From positions 1 through 64,000 of the forward strand of contig JAIVFI010000031.1 of NCBI GenBank assembly GCA_025558095.1: a stretch of DNA of 64,000 bases. The letters are read 5' to 3'. This document shows, piece after piece, positions 3,693-11,891 of this stretch. The stretch is from Hyaloraphidium curvatum SAG 235-1 (taxonomy: Eukaryota; Fungi; Monoblepharomycota). The notes beneath the pieces are model-generated. The model was not told the origin of the DNA and did no database searches. It saw only the letters and a program-made list of their open reading frames with translations. Numbering within the stretch: the first letter of the stretch is position 1; every line of letters starts with the position of its first letter. The position numbers and the translations under genes are program-made.

Positions 3693-3874
3693 TCACCGCG
3701 GAGCGGACCGGCGGGATGTAGTGGTCTGATGAATCTGAGCCTGATGTTGCCCTTTTCGAGGGTCGAGGTGGGACAAGGCTAGGCCCTGCCTCGTCCCTGT
3801 GCAGAGCACCCCCAAGCAAGGACACACCCATCTGCGCCCCTCCACACGTCTTGGAGCCACCCGCGCCCGCCACC

Positions 3875-4470
3875 ATGAAGATTACGGCGCTCTATGTGCT
3901 CCTGGGCGTGGCCGCGGTGGCGGCGCTGCCCCCCGCAAGGTGCGGCCCTGTCGACGCTTCCGCGGCACCGCCCTGATCGTGCATTGTCCCGCGCAGCGCC
4001 GCGCCCTCGGACGCCCACGCGGTGTTCCGCCGCAGCTGCGACCTCTGCGCCCCCGAGGACTACTGGTGGGCCGATCGCCCCCGGGCGGTGGCGACCCTGA
4101 CCGCCGCCCATTCCCGCCCAGCGAGTTCGCGTACCCCGGCGCGCCCGCCGGCTCCGTCGCCTGCGTCAAGTACCGCTCGTCCGTGCACCTCTACCGCCGC
4201 TACGGCGACCCGTTCACGCAGTGCGGCACCGGCAGCGACTGCTGCGGGGCCTTCCTGTCGAGCATGCCGACCCCGCCGGCGTCCCTCCAGGAGTGCACCG
4301 ACGCGTGCAACGCCTACCCCGGCTGCGCGTACGTCACCTACGGCGACACAGCGGTCCCAAAGACGTGCGCCATGTGGTCCAGCTGCAACGAGTTCGAGGA
4401 GGCGTCGGGGATGTTTCCGGTGTACGCGCGGGGGCAGAACGCATGCCCGACGACAGCCACCGGCTGCTGA
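3875..4470 (+). CDS. Small secreted Cys-rich PAN/apple-like protein, copy 1 (2 introns)
   Basis: Signal peptide MKITALYVLLGVAAVAA; propeptide ending FRR; SLQECTDACNAYPGCAYVTY...CAMWSSC fits the PAN/apple CxxxC...C..(F/Y)...C pattern. Confidence 0.8.
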
Positions 4471-4559
4471 TGCCGAACGAGACTCGGGCTGGATGGCGGC
4501 TCGACGAACGTCCTTGGATGCATGTACCTTCCGCCGAATGAGCACTGTCGGATGCGTCG

Positions 4560-4682
4560 CTGCCCCGAATCCACGGCGGTGCCGGTGGCACGGTCGGCCA
4601 ATTTCCGCTCGCCTGCCTCATTGTGTCCTTCATTTCCCTCTGTCCCGTACGGAAAGGCTGCGTCCGAAGGAGGCTCCTTACC
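4560..4682 (+). repeat. Diverged, 3'-truncated copy A of a ~200-nt dispersed non-coding element
   Basis: GGCGGTGCCGGTGGCACGGTCG...GGCTGCGTCCGAAGG...TTACC is shared with 7289-7520 and 9970-10205. Confidence 0.65.
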
Positions 4683-4991
4683 GATCCCATTCAGCGCATG
4701 CCTTTGAACCCGCTGGGTTCCCCAATTTCATTGACCCGGTCTTTTGCCCCGGGATGCGGATGGATATCCGTGTAGCACTGGTTGAATGCATCCAAAAGCC
4801 GACGATGGGCGTGACGTGACAAGCGAAACCGCCGTCGAAGGGGTGCCCATGAACTCGAGGGTGCCCTTTTCGAGGGATGGGCGGCTGGGGACGGGGCGGC
4901 TCGTCAAGGCAGACTCCGCCGTCAGGGCACGACAAGGACACACCCATTCGCGCCTCTCCTGCGTCCGTCGCAACCATTTGCACTCGTCGAC

Positions 4992-5341
4992 ATGACGATC
5001 ACCGCGTATTGCATGTTCCTGGCCGGCATCGTGGCCGCCGTGCTCGATCGCCTGCGTGACGTACCGCTCCGCAGTCCACCTCTACCGCCGCTACAGCGAC
5101 TACACGGCGTGCGCCGGAGGCAACGACTGCGCTTGCGGAACCTACCTGGCGGTCGCCGGCACGCCCTCGAGCCCGGCCGACTGTGCGGCCTCGTGCAAGA
5201 ACAATGCCAACTCCAATTACTTCGCCTACAACGCGGATGCTGATCCCAAAGAGTGCGTGCTGTATGGGAGCGGCGTGGGGGGTGCTGAGGGCGCTGGGCG
5301 TACGGGTGGTGCGCGAGTCGTACTGCCCGCTTTGAGCGCCC
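4992..5341 (+). pseudogene. Chimeric relic: internally deleted PAN/apple gene (copy 2) fused to the last ~70 bp of the 7-TM gene
   Basis: Signal peptide MTITAYCMFLAGIVAAVL is out of frame with ACVTYRSAVHLYRRY...CAASC...ECVLYGS; 5270-5341 is near-identical to 7082-7153. Confidence 0.8.
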
Positions 5342-5640
5342 TGCATTCTGTTCGTCGATACCGGCCTCGTCAGGCCCGACAATGGCACTCCGCCCCGGCG
5401 ATACGTCCAGGCAGGTCTTGGTTTGGGGATTCGTCCACCGGCCCGCCTTTTCAGACTGTGGAGGCGCCCATTGCCGCCCCGCCAAAGAAGGCTGCTGCAC
5501 GAAAGGAGCCACGTGAAATGAGATCTGACCTAGTATGTGGCGACGATGCGCTGCGGATCCTTGCAGCCGACTCGGGGCACGGTTGGGGCCCGGCCACTGC
5601 AGATACAACCCTCCGCCACGTCCACCGGAACGCGCACCGA

Positions 5641-7156
5641 ATGACCCCGGAGGAGCTCCTCGCCGTTCTCCCGCGCATTTCCGCGCTCACCCCGTCGCTG
5701 CCCGGCCTCCCCGCCGAGTCGGACGCGGAAACCGTCGCCGCCGTTGCGCTCGCGGGGGAAACCCCGCGGTCTCCCCGCGACCTCGCGCGCGCCGCCGCCC
5801 GCGCCTCTCCCCTGCTCGGCTTCCTCGCCGCGATCTTCCTTCCCCTCGCGGCCCCGGGGAGGCGATGGCTGTACCTCTCGGCGCTGTGGGGCGCCGTTCC
5901 CGGTGTGCTGCTGGCAGTCTCCCTGTACCCCTTCATCGCGTCCGCCGCGGGCGCCGACGACCCCGCCGCCGCCTTCGGCACCTTGCGTATTGCAGTAGGC
6001 GCGGCTGGCATCGCCTGGTTCGACCTGGCGTCGTGCGCCACGGTCTCCCTCCTCGATTACGACGGCGCCACCCGTCCGCAGAACCACATGCTGACCGTGC
6101 TCAGCAGGTGGCTCGATGTCGCCGGCGGCGGACCCCGCTCGGAGCCCCTGGCGAAGGCCGAGGATGGCTCCGCCGGAAGTGACGGCCTTGCGGATCACAT
6201 GGACGGAGACCCGGACTGTCCATGCGCGCGCGAGACCTGCTCCGGACGCGTAGGAACGCACGCTGCCCTCTTCTTCCTTGCCGACTTTTGCGTCCGGCTC
6301 CCGCTCATCGTTCTTTACTGCGCCATACTGCCGATGTGGACCCCGGCCTTCTCCGCGGGCGGGGTCCTCTGGAGGACCTGGTGGGGCTGCCTCGTAGGCG
6401 CCTCGTCGATCGCCACCACCTTCCTCAGCGCCCTCACAGCCCTCGCCCTCGCCTTCATTGCACCCCGGCCGCCGGTCACCCGTCTCTCGGCGCGGCTGCA
6501 GCGCCGCGCCGTCTCGCTCCGCCTCGCCGCACTCGTGCGCCGGTACCGCGCTCTCCTCCTCTTGCCTAGCGACGGCACCGATCCCACGGAACGGCCCGTC
6601 CCGTACGAGCCGTACGAACCCCTTCTGCGGCACCTCTCGACCTCCTGGTCGGGCATCCGAAGCGGGAGCGCCAAGACAGTGCAACGCGTCGCCCTCGTCG
6701 GCCTCCTTCTCGTCCCCCCCGCCATCGCCAACCTCGCCCTCTCGTGCATACCCGCGTGGGAAATCGCGGCGTTCCTGTGGTGGGCCTTCTTTGTCCTGCA
6801 GTCCCTCCCTCCTGGACTACGCCGCGGCCAACGCCCGAATCGCCACGGCCGAGGCCGCGGTGCGCGCGGCGCGGACCGAGATCCTGTCGCTGCTCGCGGA
6901 AGCCCGCGAGTGCGGCGCGTGCGCCGACCCCGCGCGGGCGGATCGCGCGGCCGCCCTGGCGGCGCACGGGGACCGGCTCGCGGCGTTCCTGGGCGCCGCC
7001 GAGCCCGCGCGGCTCTTCGGGTTCGCGGTGGGGTACGGGACCGCCAGGACTCTGTTCGTGACGATGCTGACGCTGGGGTTTGCGGCGTGGGGCGTGCTGA
7101 GGGCGCTGGGCGTACGGGTGGTGCTCGAGTCGTACTGCCCGCTTTGGGCGCCCTAG
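5641..7156 (+). pseudogene. 7-TM receptor/channel-like protein (gustatory receptor-like/7TMIC-like), copy 1, frameshifted at ~6803-6810
   Basis: Seven hydrophobic segments; homologous to 10455-11891 (H..VL.RW, CxCxxxxC, EPY..L...LS..W, SC(I/V)PxW, AAANA.I, H.D.L.AF, R(L/F)xGFxVGY, W.VLR..GV...E..CP). A 4-bp CCCT duplication breaks the frame QSL-LDY. Confidence 0.8.
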
Positions 7157-7288
7157 CGGAGCTTCACCTCTCGGTCGCCTCGCGCCTCCGCACCCTCCTT
7201 GTCGCCGCCCTCGACCCCGCACGTGGAATCGGCCCGCGCCCGGCTGCGGGACCACGTCGCCGCGAAGTCCCATCTGGGTCGCATGGTT

Positions 7289-7520
7289 GCTCCGAAGCCT
7301 TGGCGGTGCCTGTGGCACGGTCGCCTCGTACAGAACGAAATTACCCCTCCCCCGTCTCCATGCGCCCTTCATCCCCTCCCGCGGAGTACAGGGAGGCCGC
7401 GTCCGAAGGGGGCCCGTTACCTGGATCAAGAAGTTCGACTCTTCACCGGGGTCCTCGCACCCCGGCTGAGCCGGGTTCCCGACCCTTGACGCCGTCTTTT
7501 GCTGTAGCCCGCCATTGGCC
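7289..7520 (+). repeat. Copy B of the ~200-nt structured non-coding element (SINE-like or Pol III ncRNA candidate)
   Basis: Colinear with 9970-10205; A-box-like TGGCACGGTCG, B-box GTTCGACTC, hairpin CCGGGGT..ACCCCGG, TTTT at 7497-7500. Confidence 0.8.
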
Positions 7521-7648
7521 CCGATGTGCGGGAAAAGGCGTTGAATTCATGCGTTTTTCGAACCCACGCGAGCCGACTCGTCGTCGTGGAAAGCCGTGCG
7601 ACCGGAGCACCCCCCGCGAGGACAGACAACCCGACACGTCCCAGCCAC

Positions 7649-8330
7649 CATGGAGGTCACGGGGCACCGCGACGAGCACGCGGAGGGTCCCTCGGAGGGG
7701 CCGGACTCCGCCGTCCAGACCAGCCCGCGCGAACCCCCCCCCGCGTTCGAGGACGGGGACGCCGAAGGCGACCGCCCCTACGACGACTCGGACCGCGACA
7801 CCGTACGACATCCTCCGGACCCTCCGCGACCGCATCGCCGGGGCCAACCTCGCCCTGGGCCCGTACATGGGCAGGCGGGAGGACGACCCCGAGGTGGACC
7901 GGGTGATGCTGCACGTCCTGTGCCCCCCCGACCAGGTGCGCCTGCTGCGCGGTATTTGGGAGATCATCGACGGACCGGAGCACGCGGAGTGGTTCGCGAG
8001 GTTGGTGGAGACGGTCGTCGCGGCGCACGCGGATCTGGTGGAGGGGGGGGGCTCGGGAGGCGCGGCATCCCGAGGAAGGACTGGGACCGGTGGAGTGGGT
8101 CCCGATGACTCGATTGCGTGGCACGGGTTGTCTCATGCCTGTTTCGTCGGCCGCAGAGTTCATCATCTACGGATTTTCGGAGCTCGGTTCGGTTCTCGGT
8201 GCCACGTCATCGACGTCGCTCAACCCCCCTTCCGGCAGCCGAGGACGAAGGCTACAGAGGCCGTGCTCCCCCGATCGACTACAGCACCTCCAAGGTGCCC
8301 GAGCTGCCGTCCGTTTTGAGGCGGCAATGA
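7649..8330 (+). pseudogene. Frameshifted member of an unnamed acidic protein family (paralog of 20374-21018)
   Basis: DRDT.YDILRTLRDRIAGAN, LRGIWEII, AHADLVEG..RRGIPRKDWDRWS match the paralog; frame shifts at ~7803 and in the G9 run at 8043-8051; 3' end approximate. Confidence 0.65.
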
Positions 8331-8590
8331 TGTCGGCGAGCAGCTCGTCCGATCATGGGTTTGATCATGGGCCGATCGGAACTGGAGACAAGCGGGTGGG
8401 CCCCGATGGGCCGGGACCGGCCACCCACAGCGGGATGTTTCGAAGCAGTGGAAGCTTTGCCTTGGGTAGTTGAGACTGGAGGATTGCGGAGGATCGGGTC
8501 CTTGTAGGCGCGGAACAAGTTCGGGCGGAACCTCACTAGAGTCGCACCACGTGCCCGCGACATGGTGTCCGACTATCGCGCAGCCCGATC

Positions 8591-9021
8591 TCATCCCGGG
8601 CACACCGTCTCGAGCGTGAACCCCACCCCCGCCCCCCGCAGCACCGACCACAACCCCACCGCCACGGTCAGCACCGTCGCCAGGAACCCGCGGACGACCG
8701 CGTAGCCGACCCTGAACCCGAGGAACCGCCCCTGCTTCTCCTCCGTCCTCGCGAACGCGTCCAGCAGGTCCGCGTGCCGCTGCAGGGCCGAGGCGACGGG
8801 CGCGGGGGGTTCCCCAGCCAGTAGGACGAGGATGCGGGTGCGGTAGGCGAGGTACAGCGAGGCCGCGCGGTCGATCTCGGCGTTGGCGGCGGCGACGGAG
8901 AGCATCTCTTGGGTGAACACCACAAGGACAGTGACCAAGAGAAAGACCATCCAGAGGGCGACGCAGGAGGAGGAGGCGGCGGTGACGGCGGCGCCGGGGA
9001 GCAGCGTTCCCATCAGCGTCG
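8591..9021 (-). pseudogene. 5'-truncated recent duplicate of the 7-TM gene at 10455-11891 (TM5-TM7 only)
   Basis: Highly similar to 10455-10885 in DNA and protein (TLMGTLL...GVGFTLETVCPG*); similarity stops abruptly at ~9021. Confidence 0.85.
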
Positions 9022-9261
9022 CGAAGAGACACTCGTGCGGCTGGTTGGAAGCCTTCCCCAATCGCGTATCGCACGAAAAAGTCTTCGTTCGCTTCGGAGC
9101 TTTTTGGAGACCCCTGTCCTCGTCTGCTGTGCAGTCCACCCAGCGGTGGCACATCCGCGTGCGGCACCTGGCTGGAATCGGCCAGTGTCCTTTCAGGGGG
9201 ACGCACGGAAAGACACCTGTCTGCGCTCCTCCACAGCTCCTCCGGCCGCCTTCCCGCCGGC

Positions 9262-9881
9262 ATGAAGGTAGTCGTTGCGTTTATGCTCCTCGCCGGGGCG
9301 GTAGCCGCCGCGCTCGTCCCCGCTAGGTGCGCCGGTCTTTGTTTGCTCCGCGGGTGCGGCCACTACAGTGATTGACCCGGCCACCGGCAGCGCCGCGCCC
9401 TCCGATGCCCACGCGGTGTTCCGCCGCCACTGTTCGCAGTGCAGCCAGGAGGATTTTTGGTGCGCTGGACCGCTCTCCTCTCCAATCGTGCTGCTTATCT
9501 TCGACACCGCCCGACCCCGGCCGCAGCGAGTTCGCGTACCCCGGCACGCCCGCCGGCTCCGTGGCCTGCGTCACGTACCGCTCGGCCTCGCACCTCTACC
9601 GCCGCTACGCCGGCTCCTTCACGCAGTGCACCGGAGGCAGCGACTGCTGCTCCGGCCTTATAACGAACAAGCCCAACCGGGAGAGCGCCGCCGCCTGTGC
9701 CGCCAGCTGCACGGCCGAGTCAGGATGCAAGTACTTCTCCTTCCTCGAAGACAACGGGAACCCGGCAAACAACCAGTGCGCCCTGTATTCGAGCTGCGAC
9801 AGCTTCAACGCGCCGTCGGGGCCGATTGTGGCGTACGCGATGGACCAGAACGCGTGCCCGACGACCGTCGGGTGCGGATAA
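9262..9881 (+). CDS. Small secreted Cys-rich PAN/apple-like protein, copy 3 (2 introns)
   Basis: Signal peptide MKVVVAFMLLAGAVAA; SAAPSDAHAVFRR, EFAYPG.PAGSVACV.YRS..HLYRRY, SAAACAASCTAESGCKYFSF...CALYSSC...QNACPTT.GC; same intron positions as copy 1. Confidence 0.8.
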
Positions 9882-9969
9882 CGGGGGCCAACCTCCTGCG
9901 TGTGGCAAGTCGTTGGGTGTACATGTACGATTCATGGAATGGGAGCGCTTTTGATTCGGACGCCTCGTC

Positions 9970-10205
9970 GCTCAGAAGCCCGGGCGGTGCCTGTGGCACG
10001 GTCGCCCAGTCCGGAACAAAATTACCCCTCCACTGCCGCCGTGTGCACTTGATCCCCTTTTACGGTGAGCTGGAAGGCCGCGTCCGAAGGGTGCCCGTTA
10101 CCTGGATCAAGAAGTTCGATTCTTCACCGGGTTACGAGAGTAACCCGGCTGAACCGGGCTCCCGACCCTTGACGCCGCCTTTTGCCGACTAGCCCGACTC
10201 TGGCC
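9970..10205 (+). repeat. Copy C of the ~200-nt structured non-coding element (best preserved)
   Basis: 5' GGCGG can pair with 3' CCGCC before TTTT (10180-10183); B-box GTTCGATTC in a GAAG/CTTC stem; perfect 9-bp hairpin CCGGGTTAC-GAGA-GTAACCCGG. Confidence 0.8.
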
Positions 10206-10454
10206 ATTGTTTCCAAGAGGTTGGCGATGCAATCGTTCGCTTTTGGTTCCCTCGGGGGCAAAGTGATTGGGACAGGAGCCGTTGCGTTGCGACAGCAAAC
10301 AACCGAGAATGGAGCCGTCGCAACGAGACCACCATGGCGGGAATGGCTTGCTGATGATGGCGGACCAATGGTGTGGATTATGAGATTTTGCCGGAATTCC
10401 AAACAGAGCTGCTGCGACGTGCGGGATGCTGTCTTTACGCCTTTCCGCGCCGCC

Positions 10455-11891
10455 TCACCCCGGACACACCGTCTCGAGCGTGAACCCCACCCCCGCCCCC
10501 CTCAGCACGGACCACATACCCACCGCGACGGTCAGCACCGTCGCCAGGAACCCGCGGACGACCGCGTAGCCGACCCTGAACCCGAGGAACCGCCCCTGCT
10601 TCTCCTCCGTCCTCGCGAACGCGTCCAGCAGGTCCGCGTGCCGCTGCAGGGCCGAGGCCACGGGCGCGGAGGGTTCCCCGGCGAGGAGGACGAGGATGCG
10701 GGTGCGGTAGGCGAGGTACAGGGAGGCGGCGCGGTCGATCTCGGCGTTGGCGGCGGCAACGGAGAGCATCTCGTAGGTGAACACCGCGAGGAAAGTGACC
10801 AAGAGGAAGGCAATCCAGAGTGGGACGCAGGAGGAGGCGGCGGCCGTGACGGCGCCACTGGCGAGCAGCGTGCCCATCAGCGTCGTGATGCCCGCGCGGC
10901 CCAAGGACAGGTGCTCCAGTTCCGCGGGCCACGCTCTCGACAAAGCAAAGTGCAGGGCGATGTAGGGCTCGTCGGCGGGGCGGGGTGGGGGGGACGACGA
11001 GGTCTCCCTGGCTACGAGACGCGCCAGGACGTCGCCCAGCATGAGGTCCAAGGCGCGGCATCGCAAACGGCCGAGCAGGCGCGACATGGCGATGCTCGGG
11101 GTGTTGTAAATGGTGACAAGGTGGGTCGGCAGGGAGTAAACCAGCAGTTCGTTCACAAGGAAGAGGGCGACGAAGGTCGCGGCCCACGGGGTCGCCCGCA
11201 GCTGCCCGCCGAACGTGAATATCAGCGTCCACGTGAGCGAGAAGTTGGCAAAAAGCTCGGTGACCAGCGGGGGGAGCGGCGCGAGGCCGCGCAGGATCGC
11301 GGCCTGCCCCGGGAGAGAGCCGGAGCACGCATCGTCGGGGCAGGCGCACTGGACGTCCTCGGCGGATACATGGGCCACGAGACGCGATCCCCGGGTGACC
11401 AACCGCCGCCAGCGCACGAGCACGGCGAACGGATGCGCGTCCACGTTCGGCGCGGCCACGAAGCGCGCGGCCACGAAGCGCGCGGCGAGCATGTTCCACA
11501 GGCCTAGCGCGCCAAGCACGAGACATCCGCCGATCCAGAGGCCGGCCGACACCGTGTAGGCCGCCATGTGTTTCGTGCTGAACGTACCGGTCTCGCTGTT
11601 GAAGATCCACATCGCGGCAAACAGCGGGACGTAGGAGCCGGTCGTAGCAATGAGCCGAGCCCCGGTCCAGCGAGCGGCACCGGCAAGTGCGAGGTGCAGG
11701 CGTGTTGCGCCGTGCAGGAACGGGTAATCGGCGAGCCCGTCGAGGAGCGCCTTTCGGTCGAGCGCGTCGCCGCCCGCCTCGGCGTCGCGCCCCTTGGATC
11801 GCCCGCCGGGGCCCGGCATGCCGCCCGGAAAAAGGGCGTCCTCCTCCGCAGCGGACAGCCGCAGGGGGCCGGGCGGGGCGTCGCGGGCCAT
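10455..11891 (-). CDS. Intact, intronless 7-TM receptor/channel-like protein (7TMIC/GRL/DUF3537-like), 478 aa
   Basis: No signal peptide; 7 hydrophobic segments with short 1-2, 3-4 and 5-6 loops and long helical 4-5 and 6-7 loops; ends HADLLDAF...GRFLGFRVGYAVVRGFLATVLTVAVGMWSVLRG. Confidence 0.8.
   Translation of the reverse strand: MARDAPPGPLRLSAAEEDALFPGGMPGPGGRSKGRDAEAGGDALDRKALLDGLADYPFLHGATRLHLALAGAARWTGARLIATTGSYVPLFAAMWIFNSETGTFSTKHMAAYTVSAGLWIGGCLVLGALGLWNMLAARFVAARFVAAPNVDAHPFAVLVRWRRLVTRGSRLVAHVSAEDVQCACPDDACSGSLPGQAAILRGLAPLPPLVTELFANFSLTWTLIFTFGGQLRATPWAATFVALFLVNELLVYSLPTHLVTIYNTPSIAMSRLLGRLRCRALDLMLGDVLARLVARETSSSPPPRPADEPYIALHFALSRAWPAELEHLSLGRAGITTLMGTLLASGAVTAAASSCVPLWIAFLLVTFLAVFTYEMLSVAAANAEIDRAASLYLAYRTRILVLLAGEPSAPVASALQRHADLLDAFARTEEKQGRFLGFRVGYAVVRGFLATVLTVAVGMWSVLRGAGVGFTLETVCPG

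Follow-up and report, generated by a model that had tools for sequence, protein, structure and literature searches.

Near one end of a contig of the freshwater monoblepharid fungus Hyaloraphidium curvatum SAG 235-1, genes for small secreted proteins with a predicted PAN/apple fold lie interleaved with genes for channel-like seven-transmembrane (7-TM) proteins, and we consider it probable that this locus is a birth-and-death patch in which two independently expanded, lineage-specific families stand side by side. The window, that is, the whole stretch of DNA analyzed, is the first 64 kb (64,000 nucleotides) of contig C31 (JAIVFI010000031.1; 572,809 bp) in an assembly of 31.9 Mb and 55 contigs (GCA_025558095.1); the G+C content is ~67%, and the introns are of the GT-AG type and short (~55 to 67 nt). 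The locus is located 4 to 12 kb from the contig end, where a telomere repeat was looked for and was absent, so that a subtelomeric position is not proven. An earlier note on this DNA had described a co-evolving pair of extracellular binder and channel. Its family assignments, secreted PAN/apple proteins and channel-like 7-TM proteins, are correct, and all the elements it named are present in the order it gave: PAN1, repeat A, a PAN2::7TM chimera, 7TM-1, repeat B, a "relic", a 7TM fragment, PAN3, repeat C, and 7TM-2. A co-evolving pair, however, is not supported by the distribution of the two families, the varied orientation of adjacent genes, the gene trees, or the missing fusion proteins, and the evidence favors the fallback offered in the same note, co-location in a rearrangement hotspot. 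What the parts are, that they are expressed, how the duplications map, how the families are distributed across the genome, and how the trees branch are direct results; we infer the functions of both families, and likewise that their neighborhood is without functional meaning.

Genome-wide distances between the two families were calculated from two lists. The 7-TM list holds 246 of the ~450 loci and was obtained with three queries independent of the PAN genes, while the PAN list was obtained with a family profile and holds 31 independent full-length loci outside the locus, together with matches to the N-terminal motif of the family only; expected numbers of neighbors were analytic and not matched for contig position. 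Within 5 kb, 4 of the 31 full-length PAN loci have a listed 7-TM neighbor (2.2 expected, P = 0.17). The other 27 (87%) have none, and >98% of the listed 7-TM loci have no full-length PAN gene within the same distance. The counts are 4 of 31 at 3 kb (1.3 expected, P = 0.04) and 5 of 31 at 10 kb (4.0 expected, P = 0.37), and loci with the N-terminal motif only show a ~2-fold excess at 3 to 10 kb (P between 0.01 and 0.04). The excess is about twofold and borderline, and on distribution the proposed pair fails the refutation test set out in the earlier note. A further count, independent of the census, covered 1.5 kb on either side of each of the top 30 PAN loci and found a 7-TM gene at 4 of 24 independent loci, where ~1.6 would be expected at ~450 genes (P ~ 0.07 by our own arithmetic). 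The closest paralogs of the window genes also lack partners. In particular, no PAN gene lies in the 10-kb windows inspected around five of the six genes most closely related to 7TM-2 (the sixth, at C26:550800, falls inside one of these windows), and the windows around the four nearest relatives of the PANs of the locus contain no 7-TM gene.

Where the two families do adjoin, the arrangement varies from pair to pair. PAN3 and 7TM-2 are convergent, as are the pairs on contigs C4 and C28; those on C17 and C38 are divergent, those on C43 and PAN1/7TM-1 are in tandem, and the spacing varies as well. The gene trees show no co-phylogeny. PANs located beside 7-TM genes need 7 label changes on the PAN tree (shuffled mean 8.6), and 7-TM genes located beside PANs need 6 changes for 6 rows on the 7-TM tree; members with a neighbor from the other family form no cluster in either tree. 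A Rosetta-stone fusion of the two families was sought as well, and no PAN module was found among 151 proteins of the 7-TM family.

Several observations weigh against reading the locus as a patch of two unconnected families. A modest 3-kb excess of PANs near 7-TM genes persists, as does that of loci with the N-terminal motif only within 10 kb of a 7-TM gene (17 of 75 versus 9.6 expected, P = 0.013), and a cruder count that includes 7-TM loci found beside PANs gives 8 of 28 within 10 kb versus ~3. The 7-TM census covers 246 of ~450 loci, with a null that is not matched for position. One small clade of the 7-TM tree unites 7TM-1, the C43 gene with a PAN neighbor, and P0147; the last shares 87% identity with a 7-TM C-terminal piece located 0.8 kb from a PAN at C31:79.5k. 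The PANs beside this clade fall in three different PAN clades. Finally, PAN3, 7TM-1, and 7TM-2 are all transcribed in the one RNA run that contains the locus, which makes co-expression possible; the contigs of this run that cover the locus are the RNA evidence used throughout and carry no expression levels.

The duplications within the locus point to local turnover. All those detectable in a self-comparison are direct, and an inversion history was rejected because neither inverted repeats nor inverted duplications were found. 7TM-1 and 7TM-2 are distant paralogs from different subfamilies (~29% identity) whose nearest relatives lie elsewhere, on contigs C30 (73%) and C12 (58%) for 7TM-1 and on C37 (58%) for 7TM-2; they were therefore not born by duplication inside the locus. 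The tree sisters of PAN1 and PAN2 are likewise on other contigs and near contig ends: a C35 gene located 13 kb from the end (support 97/85) and a C1 gene located 59 kb from the start (support 95/80), respectively. Given that the repeats are direct only and the relatives lie on other contigs, the two families were not duplicated, inverted, and truncated together repeatedly, as the earlier note had it. No more than one event duplicated a repeat along with the 3′ part of a 7-TM gene (repeat B with the 7TM fragment, repeat C with 7TM-2), and the identities are unequal: 81% for B versus C and 92% for the fragment versus 7TM-2. The local birth-and-death turnover that the note also proposed is real. 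We propose that the two independently expanding families share a duplication-prone region near the contig end, where direct local duplications and deletions, involving a PAN gene with its flank element, a 435-nt copy of the 7TM-2 tail, and a 73-nt scar, would have given the locus its interleaved look, and that exchange with other contig ends may have added to the interleaving. Because the channel family is so large, chance neighbors would arise often.

The two intact PAN genes of the locus, PAN1 (3875-4470, + strand) and PAN3 (9262-9881, + strand), have the same architecture, in which exon 1 (65 nt in both) encodes a signal peptide, exon 2 (69 nt in both) a short linker, and exon 3 a Cys-rich domain. 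PAN1 has exons 3875-3939, 3997-4065, and 4122-4470 and GT-AG introns read from the sequence; its PAN/apple-like domain follows a signal peptide and a short linker that contains Cys. It was searched exon by exon and matches Pfam PAN_4 and PAN_1 under the threshold, and its region 3824-4454 has 69% DNA identity to PAN3. PAN3 has exons 9262-9326, 9391-9459, and 9527-9881 and encodes 162 amino acids; it corresponds to public protein P0152, as which it was searched. An RNA contig spans 9202-9945, with introns 9327-9390 and 9460-9526 both spliced out as modeled. The PAN2 fragment (5035-5271, + strand) is the middle of a PAN exon 3 truncated at both ends; it covers residues 8 to 89 of the 111-position family model and has 77 to 79% DNA identity to PAN1 and PAN3. 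A signal-peptide-like open reading frame (ORF) at 4992 lies in a frame other than that of the fragment. The fragment is fused to a 73-nt copy of a 7-TM coding 3′ end (5270-5342, + strand), which is 96% identical to the 7TM-1 tail at 7082-7154 and, in the 7-TM frame, reads as the C-terminal tail of the family (tblastn match 5195-5341). This confirms the chimera, whose PAN2/7TM junction is a deletion or fusion scar.

Among the 7-TM genes, 7TM-2 (10455-11891, - strand) is an intact intronless ORF of 478 amino acids with a predicted 7TMIC fold. It is transcribed, with an RNA contig that runs from 10191 to past 12000, and the public protein search returned no protein identical to it, the best matches being 55% paralogs. 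These data suggest that 7TM-2 is missing from the public annotation, although it is covered by an RNA contig. The 7TM fragment (8590-9024, - strand) reproduces the C-terminal 143 residues of 7TM-2, with part of TM5 followed by TM6 and TM7 but without TM1 to TM4; over 435 nt it is 92% identical in DNA and 91% in protein to the 3′ part of 7TM-2 at 10454-10888. 7TM-1 (~5641-7156, + strand) is a 7TMIC-family gene with a frame break near 6806-6815, and its two pieces were searched apart and unjoined. The break sits in a CCTC repeat, a CCTCCCTCC run. The gene is transcribed at least over ~5782-6820, and the RNA contig equals the genome over 6300-6820. After 6820 it diverges from the genome for 26 nt, for which a second allele or splicing is possible.

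The three repeats form an element of ~230 nt that lies at gene 3′ ends: repeat A (4548-4682, core 4575-4596), a diverged copy; repeat B (7277-7520, core 7302-7323), which is 81% identical to C; and repeat C (9958-10205, core 9983-10004), all on the + strand. A, B, and C share an identical core of 22 nt, GGCGGTGCC-N-GTGGCACGGTCG, which contains a GTGCC/GGCAC hairpin, while the remainder is 68 to 81% identical. Even when two mismatches are allowed, the 31.9-Mb genome holds this core exactly three times, each time at the locus; it may be a conserved hairpin with a terminator or regulatory role. The transcripts of PAN3 and 7TM-2 converge on repeat C, which falls between their 3′ ends at 9945 and 10191. 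A blastn search with the element recovered only copies B and C, and the element matches no Rfam family or tRNA. Because the core is confined to the locus, we regard A, B, and C as a co-duplicated flank of locus-specific sequence rather than a dispersed element. Their identity as a short interspersed nuclear element (SINE) or a miniature inverted-repeat transposable element (MITE) was rejected, given three genomic copies only and no Rfam or tRNA match.

The interval 7520-8590, called a relic in the earlier note, does not contain a decayed PAN or 7-TM gene. What lies there is an orphan gene (7600-8513, + strand) that is single-copy, expressed, and spliced. Its two GT-AG introns are located at positions 8095-8156 and at 8186-8237, and RNA joints and contigs support the gene. 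The only match of this gene in the genome is itself, it has no Pfam match, and PAN and 7-TM queries gave no tblastn matches in the interval. Decay from either family was therefore rejected. A further intron in the RNA contig of the orphan gene (7106-7167, 62 nt) is canonical on the minus strand only and overlaps the stop codon of 7TM-1, which suggests an antisense transcript.

The PAN genes encode three-exon secreted proteins whose PAN/apple fold is predicted from profile and model comparisons. Matches to PAN_1 or PAN_4 with E ≤ 0.1 were obtained for 12 of the 16 PAN members (best 4e−5), although no single protein reaches the Pfam gathering score (best 18.7 bits versus a PAN_4 cut-off of 27). 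When the family profile was compared with the Protein Data Bank (PDB), all 20 matched sequences were PAN/apple proteins, the best being MIC4 (2.4e−6) and factor XI (1e−5). In the AlphaFold model of PAN3, the mean predicted local distance difference test (pLDDT) score is >90 over residues 81 to 150 and 87 over residues 151 to 160, and in residues 80 to 160 strands flank a helix (99 to 108), giving an alpha-helix packed on an antiparallel beta-sheet. The top Foldseek matches of the model are MANEC, an Eimeria PAN module, and factor XI apple domains (probability 0.99 to 1.0); matches including plasminogen and SML-2 have probabilities of 0.95 to 1.0, with root mean square deviations of 3.1 to 3.6 Å over ~80 to 93 residues. 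C102 and C106 are invariant and C86 and C129 nearly invariant in the family alignment, which makes them candidates for the core cysteines of the helix-to-sheet disulfides. PAN/apple domains are binding modules, and the proteins of this family are likely to bind carbohydrate or protein.

The PAN family has ~40 small secreted members, and the profile search returned 36 full-length matches outside the locus, which represent the 31 independent loci. A further 87 matches (~90 loci) have the N-terminal motif and no PAN part, which suggests a wider superfamily of secreted proteins. PAN-less examples of the motif EFAYPG..ACV..LYRRY, which extends over ~30 to 65 residues, are found at C28:1.6-12.7k, C3:9.6-17.3k, and C9:5.8-7.1k. 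Of the PAN genes, 23% lie within 25 kb of a contig start, where 4.3% would be expected (~5-fold enrichment, P = 3e−5); the figure for loci with the motif only is 16% (4.3% expected), and 7-TM genes are 1.5-fold enriched at contig starts. Two small contigs, C47 (81.6-84k) and C48 (17-18k), repeat the PAN and 7-TM matches of C17 (634-639k) and C30 (62k) with identical scores and are either haplotigs or very recent segmental duplications; when their copies are counted, family sizes are inflated.

Structure models also place the 7-TM proteins in the insect odorant/gustatory-receptor channel (7TMIC) fold. The model of 7TM-2 (pLDDT 84.6, predicted template modeling score 0.82) has seven hydrophobic or helical segments in its 478 amino acids, a length within the ~350 to 500 residues of the superfamily. 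Its top 18 matches among solved structures are all chains of insect odorant receptors (OR), gustatory receptors (GR), and Orco (Z 9.8 to 12.6, with 312 to 355 residues aligned), while the next match aligns only 144 residues, and the Foldseek probability is 0.99 to 1.0. ESM Atlas neighbors of 7TM-2 are DUF3537, PHTF, GUR-4, and animal GRL-like clusters, with TM-scores of 0.49 to 0.59. Across 11 paralogs, the median lengths of the predicted loops, from the N terminus to the C-terminal tail, are 84, 10, 69, 6, 76, 2, 65, and 15 residues, and the predicted loops carry 30 lysines and arginines inside versus 2 outside. We therefore predict an N-in topology in which the intracellular loops are longer than the extracellular ones, with ~33 residues per subunit exposed to the outside (loops of 10, 6, and 2 residues and the 15-residue tail). 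An N-in topology with tiny outer loops defines the 7TMICs (PMC7746228).

At the sequence level, a link of the 7-TM family to the solved receptors was rejected: its profile matches no PDB sequence at E ≤ 10. The proteins have no Pfam match, and the motif TYhhhhhQF of animal GRs and GRLs is not present in the TM7 consensus of the family, which retains R446, T451, T454, W460, and R464. Five residues of 7TM-2 in the TM2-TM3 loop (H174, D179, C182, C184, and C189; residues 174 to 189, window ~11325-11372, - strand) are invariant, and this His/Asp/Cys set in a predicted intracellular loop looks like a metal-binding cluster. C355 in the TM5-TM6 turn and C476 in the C-terminal tail show the same invariance; the model places them on adjacent beta-bridges, where they may form an extracellular disulfide. 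One member of the family, P0085 (KAI9007800.1), has a C-terminal SIMPL/DUF541 domain (residues 574 to 783, E 4e−32) that is either a gene-model merger or a true fusion.

All named homologs of the 7-TM proteins are hypothetical proteins of H. curvatum, and so are the 10 sampled among the 413 representatives at 50% identity. A first look with the C-terminal part gave 572 candidates, and all 150 that were scored have E < 1e−27. We estimate the family at ~400 to 570 loci, or about one per 60 to 80 kb. Fungal GRLs have been reported as single genes for two Spizellomyces species (PMC7746228), and our literature search found no paper that connects Hyaloraphidium with gustatory receptors.

A weak, about twofold co-location of the two families remains to be explained. 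If it reflected a functional pairing, the secreted PANs would serve the adjacent 7TMIC channels as ligands, co-factors, or extracellular partners, and the genes of a pair would stay linked so as to co-evolve in chemosensing, self/non-self recognition, or defense. Such a pairing, which we regard as improbable, would agree with the twofold PAN excess near 7-TM genes at 3 to 5 kb and with the 4 of 24 loci that have one within 1.5 kb. It would also agree with the recurrence of such neighbors in the window and at C17 (duplicated on C47), C43, C38, C4, C28, and C31:79k, with the transcription of both PAN3 and 7TM-2, and with the established role of PAN/apple domains in binding. Yet the great majority of loci of both families are partnerless within 5 kb, orientation and spacing differ at every adjacent pair, and the trees do not group adjacent members, the PANs beside related 7-TM genes being unrelated to one another; moreover, the closest paralogs of the window genes stand without a partner, and no fusion protein was found. 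The small predicted extracellular surface of the channel also bears on this question, as does the binding of small molecules within the membrane bundle by solved members of the fold, a feature read from the titles of the matched PDB entries. A minimal ectodomain and relatives that bind small molecules would argue against a folded 12-kDa protein as the ligand. In a narrower version, only a subset of the fungal 7TMICs, for example the 7TM-1 subfamily, would use secreted PANs as extracellular ligands or accessory subunits, and the twofold association would then be a trace of this PAN-channel coupling; we consider this very doubtful.

A shared compartment or block duplication can also account for the excess. 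The association would then be real, modest, and non-functional, with both families residing in the same duplication-prone islands and being copied in multi-gene blocks. The weak enrichment without clear decay from 3 to 20 kb is consistent with such a compartment, as are the enrichment at contig starts (4- to 5-fold for PAN members, 1.5-fold for 7-TM genes), the recurrence of the C17 block on C47 and of the C30 block on C48 with identical scores, and the parallel between repeat B with the 7TM fragment and repeat C with 7TM-2. This explanation, which we hold to be unlikely, differs from the birth-and-death patch in degree only. The excess that it addresses is borderline, the tests are not mutually independent, and beyond C17/C47 and C30/C48, which are possible haplotigs, no copied block of PAN and 7-TM genes was found elsewhere. 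Transposon activity could also have brought the genes together, if repeats A, B, and C were a dispersed SINE or MITE that seeded ectopic recombination and so assembled unrelated genes. With its hairpin-like core and its three copies, each at the 3′ end of a gene, the ~230-nt element would be compatible with this mechanism, but the confinement of the core to the locus, the recovery of only B and C by blastn, and the lack of an Rfam or tRNA match leave it with hardly any probability. We therefore retain the birth-and-death patch as the preferred explanation of the locus.

The 7-TM family resembles the tandem arrays of insect ORs and GRs (PMC7746228; 10.1101/2023.08.30.555482) in its predicted seven-helix fold and in a predicted N-in topology with long intracellular and very short extracellular loops. 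Like those arrays, it is large and fast-diverging, with the fragments and pseudogenes typical of birth-and-death evolution. It differs from the described 7TMICs in having neither a sequence-level link nor the TM7 motif, and in its fungal host, and its long TM2-TM3 loop (~69 amino acids) with a conserved His/Asp/Cys cluster recalls PHTF-like Class-B proteins. By their predicted fold, the H. curvatum proteins are candidate tetrameric, ligand-gated cation channels. The H. curvatum PANs share their fold and the pattern of four conserved cysteines with MIC4, SML-2, the apple domains of factor XI and prekallikrein, and the N domains of HGF and plasminogen; the N-terminal PAN module of a Colletotrichum copper-radical oxidase is also among the relatives that share the fold. 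They are likewise secreted, and PAN/apple proteins are the only ones that their profile matches in the PDB. However, they are single-domain proteins of ~160 amino acids with an N-terminal motif of their own (EFAYPG...ACV...LYRRY), and they score below the Pfam gathering threshold.

In the S-locus of Brassica, the receptor kinase SRK, which contains a PAN domain, is paired with a small Cys-rich ligand, SCR/SP11. The locus studied here is similar in that a gene for a small secreted Cys-rich protein lies beside a gene for a membrane receptor-like protein in a rearranging region, and the SRK-SP11 complex is among the weaker fold matches of PAN3 (Foldseek rank 12). In contrast to the S-locus, linkage here is not family-wide, there is no co-phylogeny, the receptor-like protein is almost devoid of an ectodomain, and the PAN domain is on the secreted protein rather than on the receptor. 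The near-end position, truncated copies, and fusion scars also recall the subtelomeric multigene patches of fungi and protists, from which the H. curvatum locus differs in having no telomere repeat at the contig end.

If the functional pairing were true, it would provide a candidate protein ligand for a huge, uncharacterized fungal family of chemoreceptor-shaped proteins and a handle on what these channels sense, and a coupling between the 7TM-1 subfamily and PANs would be the first protein partner proposed for the 7TMIC superfamily. With ~450 channel genes in 32 Mb, however, neighbors are expected for any family located at contig ends, and proximity to 7TMIC genes elsewhere in the H. curvatum genome should therefore not be read as a functional link. 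The analysis corrects the gene models, which RNA supports for PAN3 and 7TM-2, defines a ~40-member family of secreted PAN/apple proteins enriched near contig ends, and provides a baseline for how often 7TMIC genes adjoin others by chance.

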